From: Oikopleura dioica
Lineage: Eukaryota > Animalia > Chordata
DNA length: 64,000 bases
Direction of reading: 5' to 3'
Assembly (NCBI GenBank): GCA_907165135.1
Contig: OU015569.1
Coordinates: 11,780,001 to 11,844,000 of the forward strand
Each line of letters begins with the position of its first letter. Position 1 is the stretch's first letter. A program made the position numbers and the translations under genes. This document shows positions 8,895-55,998 of this stretch, one piece after another. A model generated the notes under the pieces. The model saw nothing but the letters and a program-made list of their open reading frames with translations. It made no database searches and was not told the origin of the DNA.

Positions 8895-11800
8895 TCAAGT
8901 TTTCACGAGAAGTGTACTTTCGTCGGCATTATTGTCGTCGCTTGAATTGAACTCTAGAAGGGAAGGATGTGTCTTGTCGCTCGAATTCAAATTGTGGTTG
9001 GTGTCTAGTTCGTGGAATTTCTGCTGGCGGAGGCGTTCTTTTTTCAAATTTTCTTTCATTAATTTTTCAGTGTGGTTGGGCAGCATCCGCAAAACTGTCC
9101 ATTTCATGAACTACAATGATCAAAATTATTGTAAAAACGAGCTTTGAAACTGTACCTGAACAATATGCTCGAATAGGAGAATGAACATGAGTCTGCCGCA
9201 GAAGACGATGTAGTAAGCTTCTGTTTCGAAGCCGCGGTAATGGCACTTGCAACGAGCATCGTCGGAGGTAGAACTGGGCGAGTTGAGGCAGTTTTTGATT
9301 ACAGAAAAACTAAAAGAAGAAATCTTCATTTGGAAAAAAGAGGGGCTTTTACTCTTGGCGGTCGGAAAGGACTTGTTTGAAGAAGTCGTTGGAGTGGCGG
9401 TGATCCCACTTGTCTTTCATCGTCCAAATCTGGTGCTGGCCGTTTTGACCTTCACGGAGCCCGTAATCCAGCTGGGAAATATGGACGCTTTGGGTGGACC
9501 AGTCCACGTAGCCGCGGTAGCACTCGTTCTTCATCGGCCGCAGCAGTGGACTCAAGTGCGCGCAGTTGGGAGCGTACATCGTCGAGTACACAACCCTCGG
9601 GACCAGGTCGGAGGTGTAGCCGGCTACCAGGGCGTTAGTCAATACTGCGATCTTGAATAAAGCCTGTTAGGGGCTTGATAGTAATCTAACTTACCGAAGC
9701 TACAGTGCGAAGAATGCCAACCCAGGCACCGATCGAGCGAGCCATCACAAATCGCGCCCGTCGATGAAGTTTAATAAATTTATACGCATCTATCGAAAAG
9801 GGATGAAACGACGGTCCTCCGTATGAACTATGGTTGCCCTTTCACTTTTGATTTCATCCTTTCCTAATCGAATCTCAATGACATTATTCATCAGGGCAAA
9901 AAACGGGGCGAGCGGAAAAGTGGCGACGAAAATGGTGATGAATCCGAACTGAATCGCCATTTCTTGGTACTCATTCAACAAGCACAGGTTTTCATTCTTG
10001 GCGAGCAAGTAGTCACGCACCCAGGGCTTCTCGTCCGACCCCTTGTTCGTCTTTTTCTGCTTTCGGGCGTTCCACCACGGCCAGGCTAGTTCCACGATGT
10101 TGGAAACTACCTGTTTGATAATGAGGATGATGCCCAGTTGGAGGGACACGTCTTTTCAAAGAGGATTTACACTCATTACAGATGAAAACTAGTAAAAAAG
10201 TTCACGACATTTATGTTTAAATCCGTTGCCCATCAAGCAGCCGGCGGGATGGCACTCTTCCAGACGATAATAACTGTCGGAACTAATCCCCTGCCAGCGA
10301 TGATAGCGAATCGGCGTGCCAGTACCGTGTCCCTTGATGAAAGCGATGTAGAAAATCGACCCCCAAAAGTTGACCGCGTTGAACATGAACACTTTCAGGG
10401 TGTAGCTCTTTTCGTAGGCAGTGTCCAACTTCGGCATTTCCAACTCGGTTAGCCAGCTGGCTACGAGACGGAAGACCCAGTCCAGTGAGTAGATGAAAAC
10501 CATGTTTAGGCAAACTGAGCTAGGGTGGCAACGATACTCAAAAAAGGGGATGATTAGCTGTAAAATTTACAGTGTAAAGACTGCTCCCCCACATACCCAT
10601 ACCATTAAACTGGCCACCCTAGAAACTGAGGAAGCGGAAGCGATGAGAACTGAGTTCTCCGTGATCCGATCGTCCCAATCCAACCCAGTAAGGAAAGAAG
10701 CCATCCAGAGTCGATAAAGCTGAACTGTTAACACGCCGAAAATTGCGATTAGACAGAGCGTGAGGATGATCGAGACGGAGACGAATAAATACGGTAGCTT
10801 TCGGACGTAGCTCACTTTGTAGCTTCCGTCTTCTTCTTTAACTGGATAGAGTTTTTGTAGAATCGTGTTGAGAATGTTCCCCTTGCCCTGGCTGTTCTGC
10901 ATCTTCCTCGCTCGATTTTCGAACTGGACGCGGACGGAGTCGATCGAGTCTTCCGTCAAGTTCCAGTCGTTGCTCATCTTCGCTTCCTTTCTGGCCCAGA
11001 GATGGCAAAAGATCTTCGCCCAGGTGGCCATGAACAACGCGTAAATCACCGTCCACTTGTTGTCGAAGGCAGCGCTGATCTTGGCCGAGGCGCACGAGTC
11101 TTCCAAAACGGTGAAGCGGCAGCTCTTTGCCGGCCCGTCGCACGGCGGACACATGATTCGCGTATCGTTGCACATTGCTCGCTGCACCGGCGAATCGTTT
11201 ACCCAGCCGAGCACGGCGAAACCCATTATCTGGCGCATCGTTACCAGCAGACCTTGTCCAAGCTCAAGATCGCCTTTTCAGAGTTATTCAACTAGTTTAA
11301 CAGTTGATTTCCGTAATAATTTATGAGCACGGTCCCTAAGACTGCTGGCAGTATGAGCATTTGAGTGTACCAGCCAAGCCAAGTAAAGTAAATACCAATT
11401 TGCGGTCCGAAATATCTCTTGATCAAAAACAACGGCTGAAAATAGAGGGACTTTGCCCAGCAAGCCCATGTTTCCCGCAAAATCGTTCGCAGATTCGACT
11501 CTTTGATTTCTCCGACTTTCTTCTCGCCAGTTTCTTCGGTATCAGTTTCGTGGAGGGGGAAGGCGTCTTCGTAGACTTCTTCGGCCAAGAGTCGATCGAT
11601 CCCGATTTCGGCGTTTTTTCCGTAAGCAGTGTGCTTCAAAATGTACTGAATCCATGGTTGGGCAAAATTATTAGAGAAAATTATCATGATTTTGAGAATT
11701 CGCCCACCCTAGCCTGAATCACTCTAATCCGAACGCTGTTTGAAAACACTGTATCTGGATTGGAGAGTTTGATCAGTTCGTTGGAGGCGAACTTCTGGAA

Positions 11801-12384
11801 GACCTTTCGGCGGACTTTTTGGTAGCGCGCGTCGATGTAGTGTTTCTTCTTCTCGTAGAACTTGAGCGCGTTCGCGTTCTCCACAGTCCAGTTCGCTAGT
11901 TGCTGCCACATCGGCGCAAGCAGATTTGGGGACATGAACGGATCGAAGCGGTAGAGCGCCCGGGCGATCACCGATTCTTGTTTCTCCTCTAAATCGCAAA
12001 GTTGGAAACTGAAAAGAAAAACGAGGAAGTTATACCTTCGCTCTCGATGGGAAGCTTTATTTCCAGCTTTTCAGCATAATCTTCGAGCAATTCTTCCGAA
12101 ATTCCGATGAGCACGAACTCCTTGCTTTTGTTATTGACGATTTCCATTCGCCGCTCGACGAAGAGTCTTTCCTTCTTCAAATTGTTTTCAAAGTCTTCAA
12201 CGAATCGCCGGTGCTTCAAGATTTCTTCCGATTCCGAAACGGCCGTCGAGGATGAATGAATTGGCCGCGGCTTGTTCTTCTTGAGTCTGTCGTTACGAAC
12301 GAGAACGAAGCAGAAATTCTTGCGAGCTCGCTCTCGATCGTAGTCTTCCGGCGTCGGAGGCTGCTCCAAATCGCCGTCGTCCAT
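8895..12384 (-). CDS. ANO (TMEM16): Anoctamin/TMEM16 family channel or scramblase, multi-exon
   Basis: QPLFLIKRYFGPQIGIYFTWLGWYT, MCPPCD, YRLEECHPAGCLM, KQVVSNIVE, EYQEMAIQFGF, NNVIEIRLDA. The Ca2+-coordinating acidic residues appear present after splicing. Confidence 0.93.
10520..10622. mobile_element. 103-bp TIR element inserted in anoctamin coding sequence
   Basis: TIR CTAGGGTGGC...GCCACCCTAG; perfect 8-bp TSD AAACTGAG at 10512-10519 and 10623-10630. Confidence 0.92.
11653..11712. mobile_element. 60-bp degenerate element of the same TIR type, now an anoctamin intron
   Basis: Ends CATGGTTGGGCAAA and TTCGCCCACCCTAG; TSD ACTGAATC/CCTGAATC (7 of 8 identical). Confidence 0.85.
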
Positions 12385-15488: not shown

Positions 15489-18400
15489 ATGAGTTCGAAC
15501 CAGTCTCGTCGCTCGGCAAAGAAAGTAGAGGAGAGATGGTTCTTTAGTAAAAATGAAATCGAAGACACGCCCTCGGCATCGGACGGGATCGGCCACTACG
15601 ACGAGCTGCGATATCGGCAGCACGCGGCCAACCTCATTCAGGTCTGTTCTTCGCGCTCTAGAATCTCTAGAACACGGATTTCAGGAGTGCGGAAAGCAGC
15701 TCAAACTCGCCCAGCTTCCCATCAACACCGCCATCGTTTTTAGCCATCGCTTCTTCATGGTCCATTCTTTCAAGGTACAAACAGACACTTCTATAAAAAC
15801 CCCCAATTCTATGTATTGCATATAGACTCGAGAAGCCGCTTGTGGCTTCGAGAAACAAAATTCTAAGTCTTGTAGCGGCTATGCATGAATTCAACATAAA
15901 TTGAGACTTCGGCTTTGTTCAAAGAAAAAGCCGCAAGCGTCTTTTCGACTTTAGTAGCTCGAAGCCACAAGCGGCTTCTCAAATTATTTTCGATTACTTT
16001 AAAGCAGTCCAACTAATTAAGAAATAAGGGTGTTACTAATATAGCTTGGAAGTTGTCAAAATGGTTAACAAAAAATGTTAAGAAATTCAACAAATACGAC
16101 GTTGCCGCGGCGGCACTGTTTCTAGCGTCGAAGGTGGAAGAAAGCCCAAGAAAAGTGGAGCAGGTGCTGAAGGTAAAGGAAGACTGGACGCGGAAAGGAG
16201 CATCCTCGCCTGAGCCGCCCTTGGACCCGAACAGCGAAGAGTACCAGTGGAAGCTCAACCAACTCATCGACCATGAGGTTCGTTTCTAGTGGCTCTAGAA
16301 TCGCGTGTTTTCTATCATTTCTTCTTTCAGCTGCTGATGCTGCAAACGTTCGGCTTCGACGTGACGATCGATCACCCGCATAAGCATGTGATCAAGGCGA
16401 CACAGTTCATGCGAGGTAAAAACCGGTGACCAAAAAACTGACTGTTAACATTACCGTAACAGCGCCACGCGAACTGTCACACGTCGCCTACTTCATGGCG
16501 ACGAATTCGCTCAATTTGACGACGTTCTGCCTCGAGATGCGGCCGGAAGTCGTCGCCGCTACCTGCATCTACTTGAGCATCAAATGGAGCAAGTTCAAAA
16601 TGGACCGGAGCAGCGAAGGAAGGGTAAGTTGAATCGAACATGATTCTTAAGTGTATCCACAACGAAACGATAAACTTTCGTTTCAGTCAATATCTCTCAT
16701 AGATACCCTTATAATAACGCTCATATTTGATCGTAGCTTTTTTCTTAATATATTCTAGGAGTGGTGGAGCTACCTGGATCCGACGCTGACCGAGGACGAC
16801 CTTATCCTTAATGTGAAGAGATATATCGATGTTCTTAAGGTTCTTCTTGCACTAGATTCGATTGCATTTTTTAATGCGCGCGAACTTTAAGGAGCACCCC
16901 ACAAGGCTGACAGAAATCAAGCAACTCTGCCCCGGCACTGCCATTGAGACTCACTCACTCAACAACTCCAACTTAAGCGCTAGCGAAACCTCCAGCAACG
17001 ACCACAACTCCAGCCTTTCTCACAGAAGAATAAGCAGCCACCATCACAATCAGTCTAGCAACTCGACGTCCCACAGCAACAAGAGGCCCTACTCTGCCGA
17101 AGACTCCGAAGGATCAAAGAGGATGAAGACCGAATCCAGAGTTAAAGAAGAGTAAGTCGCCCTTTCTTTATAGAGCGCGTTAAATCTCGCCTCCACCTCT
17201 CTAACTCCCATTTTTCAGACCCAAACCGACCCTACCGCCAGTTCGCCTTCCTGGCTCGTGTTCGCGAGATCGTATGCGCGAGATCGAATCGCGTCTCCAA
17301 GTTCCCGAAAGCGGGAACTCTAGCTCTTCGAAAATGTAAGTCCAGTTCGCTCCATCGCTTCGTTTTAAGATTATTAGCACTTTCGAAAACTTTGAGTTCA
17401 GTCAAAATCAGAAAAAGTCCCTGGGACCGAAAAAGGTTCCGTATTCTGAATATTTAAAGAGGTATTCTTGAGCATGAGTATTTTTGACTGAGAAAACAAA
17501 ACAAAAAAAGCAGGGTACTATTCAGTATCGTCCTAACAAGGGGGCCCTAGAAGAGAGACTCTTAAAGTTTACAGCCAAAAGTAGGGAAGTTACCATCCCT
17601 TTCTCCCCTTATTCTAGTTTCTTGAGAAGTAAAGTGAAACAGGTCTGGGCTACTGTAACTGTGGCATGCCTGTGACTGGGCTCAGCTAACTGTGTTCAAA
17701 ATCTGACTGAGGATTTGAAAGAGCTGCGTTGACGCTTCGTTTCTCATCACTCAGTTTTCTACACAGGTTGCTGATCCCAGTCCTTCGAGCTAAATTTCCG
17801 CAGCACTTTCTTTTTTCATTATTTATGTCATTTTTATTTTCTTGGCTTGGGAAGATGGATTTCAATGTCTGAATGAATCTAATTGTGCTTGACCCTTTTT
17901 CTATTCCATCACTTCTTTCTTTTTATGATTTTTTTCATTTCAGGCCCAGCAGCGCGCACAAATCAAATTCTTCTAACTCTGCTTCATCCAACTCTGGCCG
18001 ACCTGGATCCTATTTACCTAGACTAACTGCTGATGAGAGATTCGTTAAAGAGTGCCTTAGACAAAAAGAACTTTGGGCAAAACTGAGCGACGAAGAGAAA
18101 GAGTATTGTAAATCATGGGTCAGTGTTTCTATATTATTAGATTTTATATCATTTGTTATCATTAATTAATCTTATCCTACTAAATATGGTCATAAATTGA
18201 TGGCAAGCGTCTTCGAGCTAGGATCGACAATGCCCACCAGACACGCGATCGAAAACCGACGTTTTTGTCGAGTTTTTGTTGGATCTCGTACAAAATCCCG
18301 AATCTAAAAATCCAACCCAAGCCCGACAAAAACCCGAAAAAAACGCTATAAATACCCGAAAACTCCCCTACGAAAACCCGACCAAAGCCCGATCGGCAAA

Positions 18401-34412: not shown

Positions 34413-35132
34413 CTCTCGGAAGCACTTTGGTCAACTACTTCCCTTGTAACAAAAACAATCAACAAGGAAGGGATGAGCTAGAAAATGTTGCACCAAAAAG
34501 ACTCATCTCGAATATTTAACTCAACATTCGTACTCGTCACTATGGAAACATGCGTCTAGGGCCCCTTCTTTCCGCGTTTATCATAATTTCATAGTGTTTT
34601 TTAATTTTTAGCGGGTTAATTTTTCTTATCTACTTCATTTTTAGTGATTTTTAAGGCTTAAAATGGAGAAATCATAAATTTTTATAAAAAAAATAGCCCA
34701 AAAAGGTTAATTTTCGGAATCTCTTCCCATCTACCGCGCTGGCATCTCTTCCCAGCTGAGGAATTCAACGTCGTCGAGACATTTTTTCAACCCAGAAGAC
34801 AGAATAAGGAGACAAAAACAACAACAGCGGAATGATTTGATATAATTTCGACTGATAGTACTTATGATATTGAATTGATTGGGCTTCTCAGACGAAATCA
34901 ATTCGGAAAATTCCTGTTTTGGTAAAAAACCCGGGGATGATTTTTATCAACCATTTGTATTTTTGATGTCTTGGTCTCTGTCTCGGCTGAGTCCTCTTAA
35001 ACTGCCGCGCAGTGGGTCTGGCCGTAGAACGCGACTGGAATTAAAAAGTAAACTTTTTGCTCCCGACAAAACAAAACCCCGAAGAAAATAACTCCTTTCA
35101 ACCTTTCTGCCGTTGCTTTTGATCGAGAGAAG

Positions 35133-54002: not shown

Positions 54003-54190
54003 TAAGGGTCGGCAACCTGCGTAGGAACCTGAGTCAGGGTTCCGAAAGAGCCTTGATAAAAATCTTAATCAAACTTTTAAATTCTGGCGAAGCCGCTTTG
54101 CGGCTTTGTTTATAAAAAGCCGGATTGCGGCTTTTTAGTAAAGATCTTTCGGGGCCCTGAGTCAGGTTTCTACACAGGTTGCCGGCCCAG
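54003..54190. mobile_element. MITE family A full-length copy
   Basis: GGTCGGCAACCTGCGTAGGAACCTGAGTCAGGG...CCCTGAGTCAGGTTTCTACACAGGTTGCCGGCCCAG. Confidence 0.88.
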
Positions 54191-54338: not shown

Positions 54339-55096
54339 TTAAGGATATAGCCTATGAAATTGAACTTTCATAGCGCCTAAATGCGACGTCGGATCATTCT
54401 ATTTCAAAAACAATCCTATCTTAAAATGTACGCAGAACTCGATTCTGGTACTTTTTAAAAATTTTCATTAGAATTTTTCTCTGTAGAGCGTTTTGAAATC
54501 TTACGATCGCGATTTCTCGAAATATTTACATTAAATCGGTCGAGTTTTTTTGATAGAAAAGTAATCTAGACCCTTATCTACAATATTGTGGCTTTGGTTT
54601 TCTCTTATCTCGACAAAAACCGATTTTAGAGCCATTTCCATGAGGCTTCCTCGGCGCGTGAATAGTGTAAAAAGCGCTGCGCGGTGTGCTTAATCTCTCG
54701 ACTCCTCTTTCCCGAGAGAGTGCGCGCCTTTGAAAGAGCGCTCTGATTGGTTGGACTCAAAAAAGCGCGCATGGAAGAAAAACAGGAGCAAGAAAGAGGA
54801 AAACACTAGAATGAAAATTTGGCCGAGTTTGAGAATTTTTCAGCCACAATATTCTAGTTTAGCATTTTGCTAATGCAGTCATCGGTTTAGTTTTAGCGAT
54901 TTAATGTAAATATTTCGAGAAATCGCGATCGTAAGATTTCAAAACGCTCTACAGAGAAAAATTCTAATGAAAATTTTTAAAAAGTACCAGAATCGAGTTC
55001 TGCGTACATTTTTAGATAGGATTGTTTTTGAAATAGAATGATCCGACGTCGCATTTAGGCGCTATGAAAGTTCAATTTCATAGGCTATATCCTTAA
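54339..55096. mobile_element. 758-bp foldback element with 200-bp near-identical arms and TTAA at both ends (Kolobok-like candidate)
   Basis: 54339-54538 is the reverse complement of 54897-55096 with one mismatch by my reading; ends are TTAA-GG...CC-TTAA. Confidence 0.8.
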
Positions 55097-55807: not shown

Positions 55808-55998
55808 TTCGGCTCGGGAAACCTGAGTCAGGATCTGAAAGATCTTAAATGAAAAGCCCCGTAGCGGCTTTTTAAAAACGAAGCCGCGCAGCGGCTTCGC
55901 AAATTATCAATTCAATCTTTTATGCGGCTTTTCAATTAAGGTAATTCAGACCCAGGGTCAGGCTGACTCAGGTTTTCTACTCAGTTTACCGAGCCCAG
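55808..55998. mobile_element. MITE family A full-length copy
   Basis: GGCTCGGGAAACCTGAGTCAGG...CTGACTCAGGTTTTCTACTCAGTTTACCGAGCCCAG; interior GCCGCGCAGCGGC. Confidence 0.88.

Follow-up and report, generated by a model that had tools for sequence, protein, structure and literature searches.

Can a gene whose coding exon is interrupted by a mobile element, in the middle of a transmembrane helix, still be read in frame? This question is raised by a stretch of 64,000 nucleotides (hereafter the window) from the larvacean Oikopleura dioica (assembly GCA_907165135.1, contig OU015569.1, positions 11,780,001 to 11,844,000 of the forward strand), in which an element of 103 bp lies in the exon coding for the fourth transmembrane segment (TM4), a pore-lining helix, of an anoctamin (TMEM16), a calcium-activated channel or scramblase. 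As a whole, the locus is, with moderate likelihood, best explained by an hAT-like insertion that was retained under selection and is spliced out in frame. A small, non-autonomous DNA transposon, whose 8-bp duplication makes it hAT-like, would have inserted into the TM4-coding exon on the branch of the Okinawa-type O. dioica, after its split from the Bergen-type and a third lineage. Since then, the element would have been retained in the gene under strong purifying selection and taken out of the pre-mRNA in frame, acting as a spliceosomal intron, a removal that constraint on the gene suggests. Productive splicing may proceed via the element's own inverted ends, with a donor CTAG/GG (the slash marks the exon–intron border) 4 nt inside the element and an acceptor CCCTAG/ at its last base; the resulting 12-nt scar would insert Ser-Ser-Ser-Val into TM4, roughly one turn of the helix above its conserved Asn.

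The element, the interrupted exon and the empty site

The preliminary description of the window had pointed to a 103-bp element with inverted ends and a perfect 8-bp duplication, and both the sequence and a scan of the window bear this out. The inverted ends (10 bp) and the target-site duplication (8 bp) are perfect:

10520..10622, no strand assigned: non-autonomous DNA transposon resembling a miniature inverted-repeat transposable element (MITE), 103 bp, inside a coding exon
10520..10529, no strand assigned: terminal inverted repeat CTAGGGTGGC, low-coordinate end, arms 100% complementary
10613..10622, no strand assigned: terminal inverted repeat GCCACCCTAG, high-coordinate end, exact reverse complement of CTAGGGTGGC
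10512..10519, no strand assigned: target-site duplication copy AAACTGAG (gene strand CTCAGTTT), downstream copy in the transcript
10623..10630, no strand assigned: target-site duplication copy AAACTGAG, upstream copy in the transcript

The 10-mer CTAGGGTGGC and its reverse complement together match only twice in the 64 kb, at the two element ends, with 0.02 matches expected by chance. When the window was scanned for perfect 8-bp direct repeats around a 10-bp inverted repeat (at most one mismatch, 40–600 bp apart), the TM4 site was the sole genuine match, the remaining ones being nested artefacts of one large foldback; by our own estimate, ∼0.016 such structures are expected per window by chance. 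The window contains the element in one full copy. An Rfam search with the element returned no match, and a metagenome scan for both inverted ends 60–90 nt apart yielded 10 unrelated sequences, none of them with duplications, which is about the number estimated for chance. Translation of the minus strand agrees with the earlier observation that the element interrupts the open reading frame: read-through runs ...SASSVSRVASLMVWVCGGAVFTL and then meets a TAA, the stop coming after 21 codons.

The interrupted gene comprises the following parts:

8895..12384, minus strand: anoctamin (TMEM16) gene, ten exons, 965 residues when the element and one duplication copy are removed exactly
10631..11252, minus strand: 5′ part of the interrupted exon, coding for TM2, TM3 and the beginning of TM4, up to ...ENSVLIASASS
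10230..10511, minus strand: exon part downstream of the element (the rest of TM4, and TM5), starting (V)CLNMVFIYSLD

The 965-residue model is an open frame that aligns from end to end with O. dioica orthologues, including the transcript-derived Bergen protein P0161. Its pieces match TMEM16A and TMEM16F in the PDB, and in mouse TMEM16A the match of the upstream piece extends up to residue 522 and that of the downstream piece begins at residue 545 (INLVVIILLD...). Three exon pieces score 57–93 bits against the Pfam Anoctamin profile (PF04547; cut-off 28), the upstream piece reaching profile position 150 and the downstream piece starting at 167; for the Bergen orthologue, the score is 383 bits, and PF16178 is matched as well. 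The calcium-site motifs SNIVE, EYQE and EIRLD are intact in the modelled protein, their assignment following the calcium-binding residues in TM6–TM8 of published mouse TMEM16A structures (N650, E654, E702, E705, E734 and D738). The junction sits one residue before the Leu-Asn-Met of TM4; the Asn aligns with N546 of TMEM16A, and the Met with the position of F518, the inner-gate residue of TMEM16F.

In two other lineages of O. dioica, that from Bergen and a third one represented on metagenome contigs, the exon is uninterrupted at the element site, and the relatives' sequence equals that of the window minus the element and minus one copy of the duplication. The contiguous reading ...ENSVLIASASSVCLSMVFIYSLDWVF... 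is found in the Bergen protein CBY22984.1 (P0173), in the transcript-derived P0161 and P0175 (948 residues each), in P0158, a 708-residue protein from a Tara metatranscriptome, and in P0151, P0153 and P0154, which are reading-frame fragments on metagenome contigs. Likewise, IASASSVCLSMVFIYSLD is gapless in P0173, P0161, P0175, P0158, the metagenome contigs L001 and L003, and P0178. The latter is a single reading frame of 420 residues on the Bergen-type genomic contig L002, which runs from before the position of the window's intron at 11646–11713 to the end of the TM4–TM5 exon. Contig L001, whose exons are 81–84% identical to those of the window, runs on without interruption at the point where 111 bases are additional in the window. 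The target is present as a single copy, CTCTGTCT in L002 and GTCCGTCT in L001 and L003, compared with CTCAGTTT in the window, and all of these differences are synonymous. More distant larvacean-like reading frames (P0013 and P0051) are also without a gap at this site.

Because the site is empty in Bergen, in the third lineage and in these more distant reading frames, the insertion is derived on the lineage of the window, and it is almost certainly a lineage-specific transposon insertion; that a transposon had entered this TM4-coding sequence had been proposed before. The window protein is 92% identical to the Bergen proteins, which is consistent with an Okinawa-type lineage, as is the published tree (bioRxiv 10.1101/2023.05.09.539028). 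An ordinary old intron with chance repeats was rejected: three loci have the empty site, and no other structure of this kind occurs in the window.

Age of the insertion and constraint on the gene

A second genome carrying the element was found in a DNA run from a different study and sample (X5), in which one contig spans the whole gene; given this independent contig, an assembly artefact was rejected. The contig differs from the window at 119 positions in 3,551 nt (3.4%), and its copy of the element has one extra base behind 10607. The insertion had been described as very young, a view that has to be given up: since the second carrier genome is 3.4% diverged and the two element copies differ by a 1-nt indel, it is not very young.

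All four indels between X5 and the window (at 9333, 9681, 10194 and 10607) lie outside the coding sequence; three of them fall in introns, the fourth in the element itself, and all four would miss coding sequence by chance with a probability of ∼0.001. Substitutions were examined over essentially 8943–9828 (the exons at 8900–9828). In that stretch, 19 of 170 non-coding and 19 of 759 coding positions differ, that is, introns are ∼11% and exons 2.5% diverged. The coding changes comprise 16 synonymous and only three non-synonymous ones, which gives a ratio of non-synonymous to synonymous polymorphism per site (pN/pS) of 0.05; neutrality of these 3′ exons is rejected by a binomial test (p = 1e-8). 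Compared with Bergen, protein identity is ∼96% downstream of the element and 83–89% in the upstream exons. From the fact that the gene is still conserved, in both its pN/pS and the placement of its indels, we infer in-frame removal of the element as an intron, which is quite likely.

If, instead, the insertion represented a loss-of-function allele, the mRNA would remain unspliced or be mis-spliced and give rise to a protein truncated in TM4 or to a degraded message, the gene being either not needed in this lineage or in the course of decaying into a pseudogene. The TAA met after 21 codons of read-through, the lack of an exact splice with a G-starting intron (see below) and the failure to obtain RNA evidence of splicing from three runs (X19, X20 and X7) would agree with this. 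However, the element occurs in two independent genomes with copies that have diverged by an indel, pN/pS downstream of it is 0.05, all indels avoid coding sequence, the calcium-binding motifs are intact, and no other part of the protein is as similar to its Bergen counterpart as that coded for by the downstream exons. Two independent genomes would hardly both carry a null allele if the gene is under constraint, and we regard loss of function as decidedly unlikely. Of the findings that would have spoken against the earlier interpretation, that of an unrelated intron at this position in relatives was not made, the exon being contiguous there; the other, a pseudogene, is improbable.

Possible splice routes

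How the element might be removed has to be considered against the introns that the gene already has. Of its nine other introns, four are non-canonical, each preceded by AG or GG as the last exon bases:

11713-11646 (11646..11713), minus strand: GC-AG intron, 68 nt, absent from the Bergen lineage (L002), starting G/CTAGGGTGG, flanks GATTCAG[G/T]
11335-11253 (11253..11335), minus strand: GG-AG intron, 83 nt, absent from the Bergen lineage (420-residue reading frame), TTAG/GGACC...ACAAG/GTCT
10229-10152, minus strand: GC-AG intron
9863-9790, minus strand: GA-AG intron

The last of these (9790–9863) splits the Asp codon of the calcium-site motif EIRLD. The four GT introns of the gene all start with GTA. 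In the Okinawa O. dioica genome, ∼11% of introns are reported to be non-canonical (PMC8008620), and the types accepted for the species include GA-AG, GC-AG and GG-AG (PMC8008620; bioRxiv 10.1101/2023.05.09.539028). With both this frequency and the annotated splice types, the four non-canonical introns fit.

Exact removal of the element and one duplication copy is possible in nine equivalent registers, among which the only half-canonical ends are CT-AG, GT-CA and TT-AG; no G-starting intron with an AG end removes the element exactly. The preliminary description had named TT-AG and GT-CA, both rightly, as the ends needed for exact removal, but overlooked CT-AG as a third possibility. Removal via one of these borders, perhaps aided by the 10-bp stem, through which the two copies of the duplication come to lie close to each other, would restore the ancestral TM4 and give the orthologue sequence without a gap, and with TM4 so strongly conserved, selection would favor such a scarless product. 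Fritillaria borealis exactly removes MITE-derived introns with non-GT/AG ends (reviewed in PMC11282704), more flexibility has been reported for 3′ than for 5′ splice sites (PMC7072748), and the 68-nt intron at 11646–11713 looks like a case of this kind whose donor has become GC through a T-to-G change. On the other hand, the types annotated for O. dioica are GA-AG, GC-AG, GG-AG, GT-CG and GT-AA, none of them starting with T or ending in CA (bioRxiv 10.1101/2023.05.09.539028), and outside Fritillaria, U2-type introns very rarely begin with anything but G. RNA folding pairs the inverted ends into a stem, but shuffled sequences fold about as stably as this hairpin (z = −0.8). Exact removal is considered unlikely.

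Inexact removal is available through a limited set of sites. Because of the indel in X5 behind 10607, donors at or below 10602 are excluded as a productive form shared by both genomes; the remaining in-frame, stop-free pairs of a G-starting donor and an AG acceptor are:

GG 10619 / AG 10515, minus strand: adds two residues (SI)
GG 10618 / AG 10520 (10520..10618), minus strand: leading candidate intron, 99 nt, GG-AG, adds four residues (SSSV)
GG 10615 / AG 10520, minus strand: adds five residues
GT 10610 / AG 10515, minus strand: adds five residues
GT 10626 / AG 10537, minus strand: adds seven residues (YRCHPSS); the only short canonical GT-AG pair
GT 10617 / AG 10537, minus strand: adds 10 residues
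GC 10614 / AG 10537, minus strand: adds 11 residues

The three in-frame splices proposed before, adding four, five or seven residues, are correct and among these, whereas the pair GG 10619 / AG 10515 (two residues) and several longer ones had been missed. Among all pairs, only those adding two and four residues give products free of Arg, His and Pro. The four-residue route uses as donor CTAG/GG in one inverted end and as acceptor CCCTAG/, the last base of the other end, which is also the first YAG at that end of the element. Its donor context, TAG/GG, is the same as that of the gene's own GG-AG intron at 11335. The scar consists of 4 nt of the element plus the 8-nt duplication, 12 nt in total, which keeps the frame; since the duplication is retained, the Ser-Ser-Val before the Cys would be unchanged from the ancestor and the upstream part of TM4 shifted by about one turn. 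On the evidence of these motifs, this GG-AG intron may be the main splice route, an assignment that we make tentatively.

Alternatively, one of the other in-frame pairs, with a longer or different scar (seven, two, five or 10 residues), could be used, possibly in a mixture that includes out-of-frame products. All of the pairs listed are in frame and stop-free, the acceptor AG 10537 comes directly after a branch-like CTAAT and 13 nt of pyrimidines, and an automatic gene finder would prefer GT-AG. However, the products longer by five, seven and 10 residues would place Arg, His or Pro in a conserved hydrophobic helix, and their GT donors (GTTTCT, GTTTAA and GTGGCC) contrast with the GTA of the gene's four GT introns. 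For the two-residue product, the donor has TA as the last exon bases and the first YAG must be skipped. We hardly expect productive splicing to depend on these sites.

Several observations count against in-frame splicing through the inverted ends in a gene that has stayed under selection. Past the pyrimidine run and the best branch-like site (CTAAT), the first AG to be met is that of GAG at 10537 and not that of the terminal CCCTAG, which would favor the products longer by seven or 10 residues, and four added residues beside the gate region of TM4 may not be tolerated. No RNA read or contig across the element junction was found among the runs X19, X20 and X7. The two bulk RNA runs (X19 and X20, from 2026 and labeled with the species) gave six and two partial reads, respectively, which are 90–95% alike; the animals probably belong to another lineage, or the gene is silent in them. 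A wild metatranscriptome (X7) contains two near-identical exon contigs, 10888–11083 and 10230–10429, on either side of the element, both of which end before reaching it. Should recombination be frequent, the 3′ exons may have acquired their differences before the insertion took place, in which case pN/pS would reflect constraint on the gene in the population and not strictly after the insertion. Finally, family and mobility of the element are deduced from its structure, with one full copy seen.

The contig covering 10230–10429 begins exactly at the predicted exon end, 10230, with five unaligned letters beyond, as spliced mRNA would show. Exact protein look-ups of the two reading frames of the window that abut the element found nothing on record, and protein searches for a transcript-derived protein of the Okinawa type found none, only those of the Bergen type and of the third lineage.

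Related insertions and transposon-derived introns elsewhere

Three introns of the window, at residues 200, 305 and 509 of P0161, have no counterpart in Bergen, whereas an intron at residue 188 is present in Bergen and missing here. The 68-nt intron at 11646–11713 has GATTCAGG and GATTCAGT on its two sides, with ...ATTCAGT... as the ancestral site, and its donor G may be due to a T-to-G substitution in the upstream copy of the duplication. It has a 9-nt end in common with the TM4 element, the far end reading CCATG rather than CCTAG; beyond this 9-nt end, the similarity of the two is not significant (621 of 2,000 shuffles, p ∼0.3). The intron may represent the same process at a later stage, one that leaves no scar. 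In the 83-nt GG-AG intron at 11253–11335, neither convincing inverted ends nor a duplication were found.

In the third lineage, the same large exon contains an element of 293 bp (L001 381–673), an end of which is also present in L003 (∼280–296). It has perfect 17-bp ends, CAGAGTTGTAAATTTGC, and an 8-bp duplication, AGCAAAGG. Its removal as a 301-nt GC-AG intron gives exactly the transcript-derived P0158 (MQQRSKGNIL) and leaves two tandem copies of AGCAAAGG; an empty allele could yield the same protein.

The intron after SNPDS (P0161 residue 188) is present in the Bergen-type (L002 3289–3358) and in the third lineage and is missing in the window (11714–11863); the GenBank model CBY22984.1 appears to retain it as 23 extra residues. 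Elsewhere in the window, solitary CTAGGGCCCC starts occur at 34556 (plus strand) and 17545–17550 (minus strand) with no inverted partner nearby, and they may be ends of another CTAGGG-type element. A foldback at 54339–55096 has two 200-nt arms, 100% complementary, with 358 nt between them. A hairpin-like pair at 54006–54188 has 57-nt arms, 82% complementary and 69 nt apart, to which a 64-nt arm pair at 54087–54150 and 55837–55900 is related; together they may constitute another small inverted-repeat element family.

Among transposable elements, the TM4 element resembles MITEs of the hAT superfamily in its 8-bp duplication and short inverted ends, and read from its second base, the end is TAGGG. 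This resembles the end of maize Ac, TAGGGATG. Unlike in hAT elements, however, the perfect duplication puts a C outside TAGGG; the 10-bp repeat starts with CTAGG, so that TAGGG fits the hAT end motif YARNG when the first base is left out of account. Within the 64 kb, neither a transposase nor an autonomous partner was seen. The element may also belong to another superfamily that makes 8-bp duplications, and the assignment, for which the duplication is the sole basis, goes as far as hAT-like.

Transposon-derived introns are well documented, including in the larvacean Fritillaria (PMC9860276 and PMC11282704). The introners of Aureococcus anophagefferens are likewise elements of the DNA-transposon type with an 8-bp duplication and bear both splice sites (Huff et al, 2016; Gozashti et al, 2022, PMC9860276). 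There, 12 bp, or four residues, are added (4 nt of the element plus 8 nt of the duplication; PMC9860276, Fig. 2F–G), the same arithmetic as in the CTAG/GG...CCCTAG/ route, and there, too, the comparison is with an element-free orthologue. Aureococcus, however, is an alga in which near-identical copies number in the thousands, donors are GT and splicing is proven by RNA sequencing, whereas the present case concerns an animal, one full copy and a putative GG donor. The MITE-derived introns of F. borealis (Henriet et al, 2019; in PMC11282704 and PMC13326754) are also those of a larvacean, lineage-specific, with inverted ends and duplications kept, and the spliceosome neutralizes exon insertions, as is proposed here. 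In contrast, Fritillaria has AG-AC or AG-AT borders, exact removal and duplicated U2AF genes, whereas O. dioica is reported to use G-starting introns ending in AG and has no exact pair at this site. In the geometry of the Micromonas pusilla type, one splice site lies in the element and the other comes from the duplication. It fits both the 11646–11713 intron and the CAGAGTT-ended 293-bp element of L001: the donor consists of the last duplication base, G, and the first element base, C, and the acceptor AG lies inside the duplication. The TM4 element cannot use this geometry because its gene-strand duplication is CTCAG/TTT, with T rather than G after the AG.

The case thus joins transposon-derived introns that are already known, and it is useful for its empty sites, its second carrier, the constraint on the gene and the lack of a clean exact splice. 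The birth of an intron has seldom been observed with an empty site, a filled site and signs of ongoing selection together. The gene offers three lineage-specific insertions for comparison: the one in TM4 with no clean exact splice, the one at 11646–11713 with an exact GC-AG splice, and that of L001/P0158, also with an exact GC-AG splice. Since the element ends are inverted repeats, the geometry of splicing through them works in either orientation and in any codon phase. That a CTAGGG-ended element is a self-contained, orientation-independent generator of introns in an animal, with the neighboring 68-nt GC-AG intron as a later, scar-free stage, is a doubtful proposition. If true, a scar of 12 nt, in frame irrespective of the codon phase, would remain after every insertion of a CTAGGG element that makes an 8-bp duplication, and the pore-lining helix of a working anoctamin would gain one helical turn. 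Possible outcomes in such an essential helix are a four-residue scar, non-canonical exact splicing or inefficient splicing, and the locus would provide a natural test of how far the length of TM4 near the gate is tolerated to vary in a TMEM16 protein.

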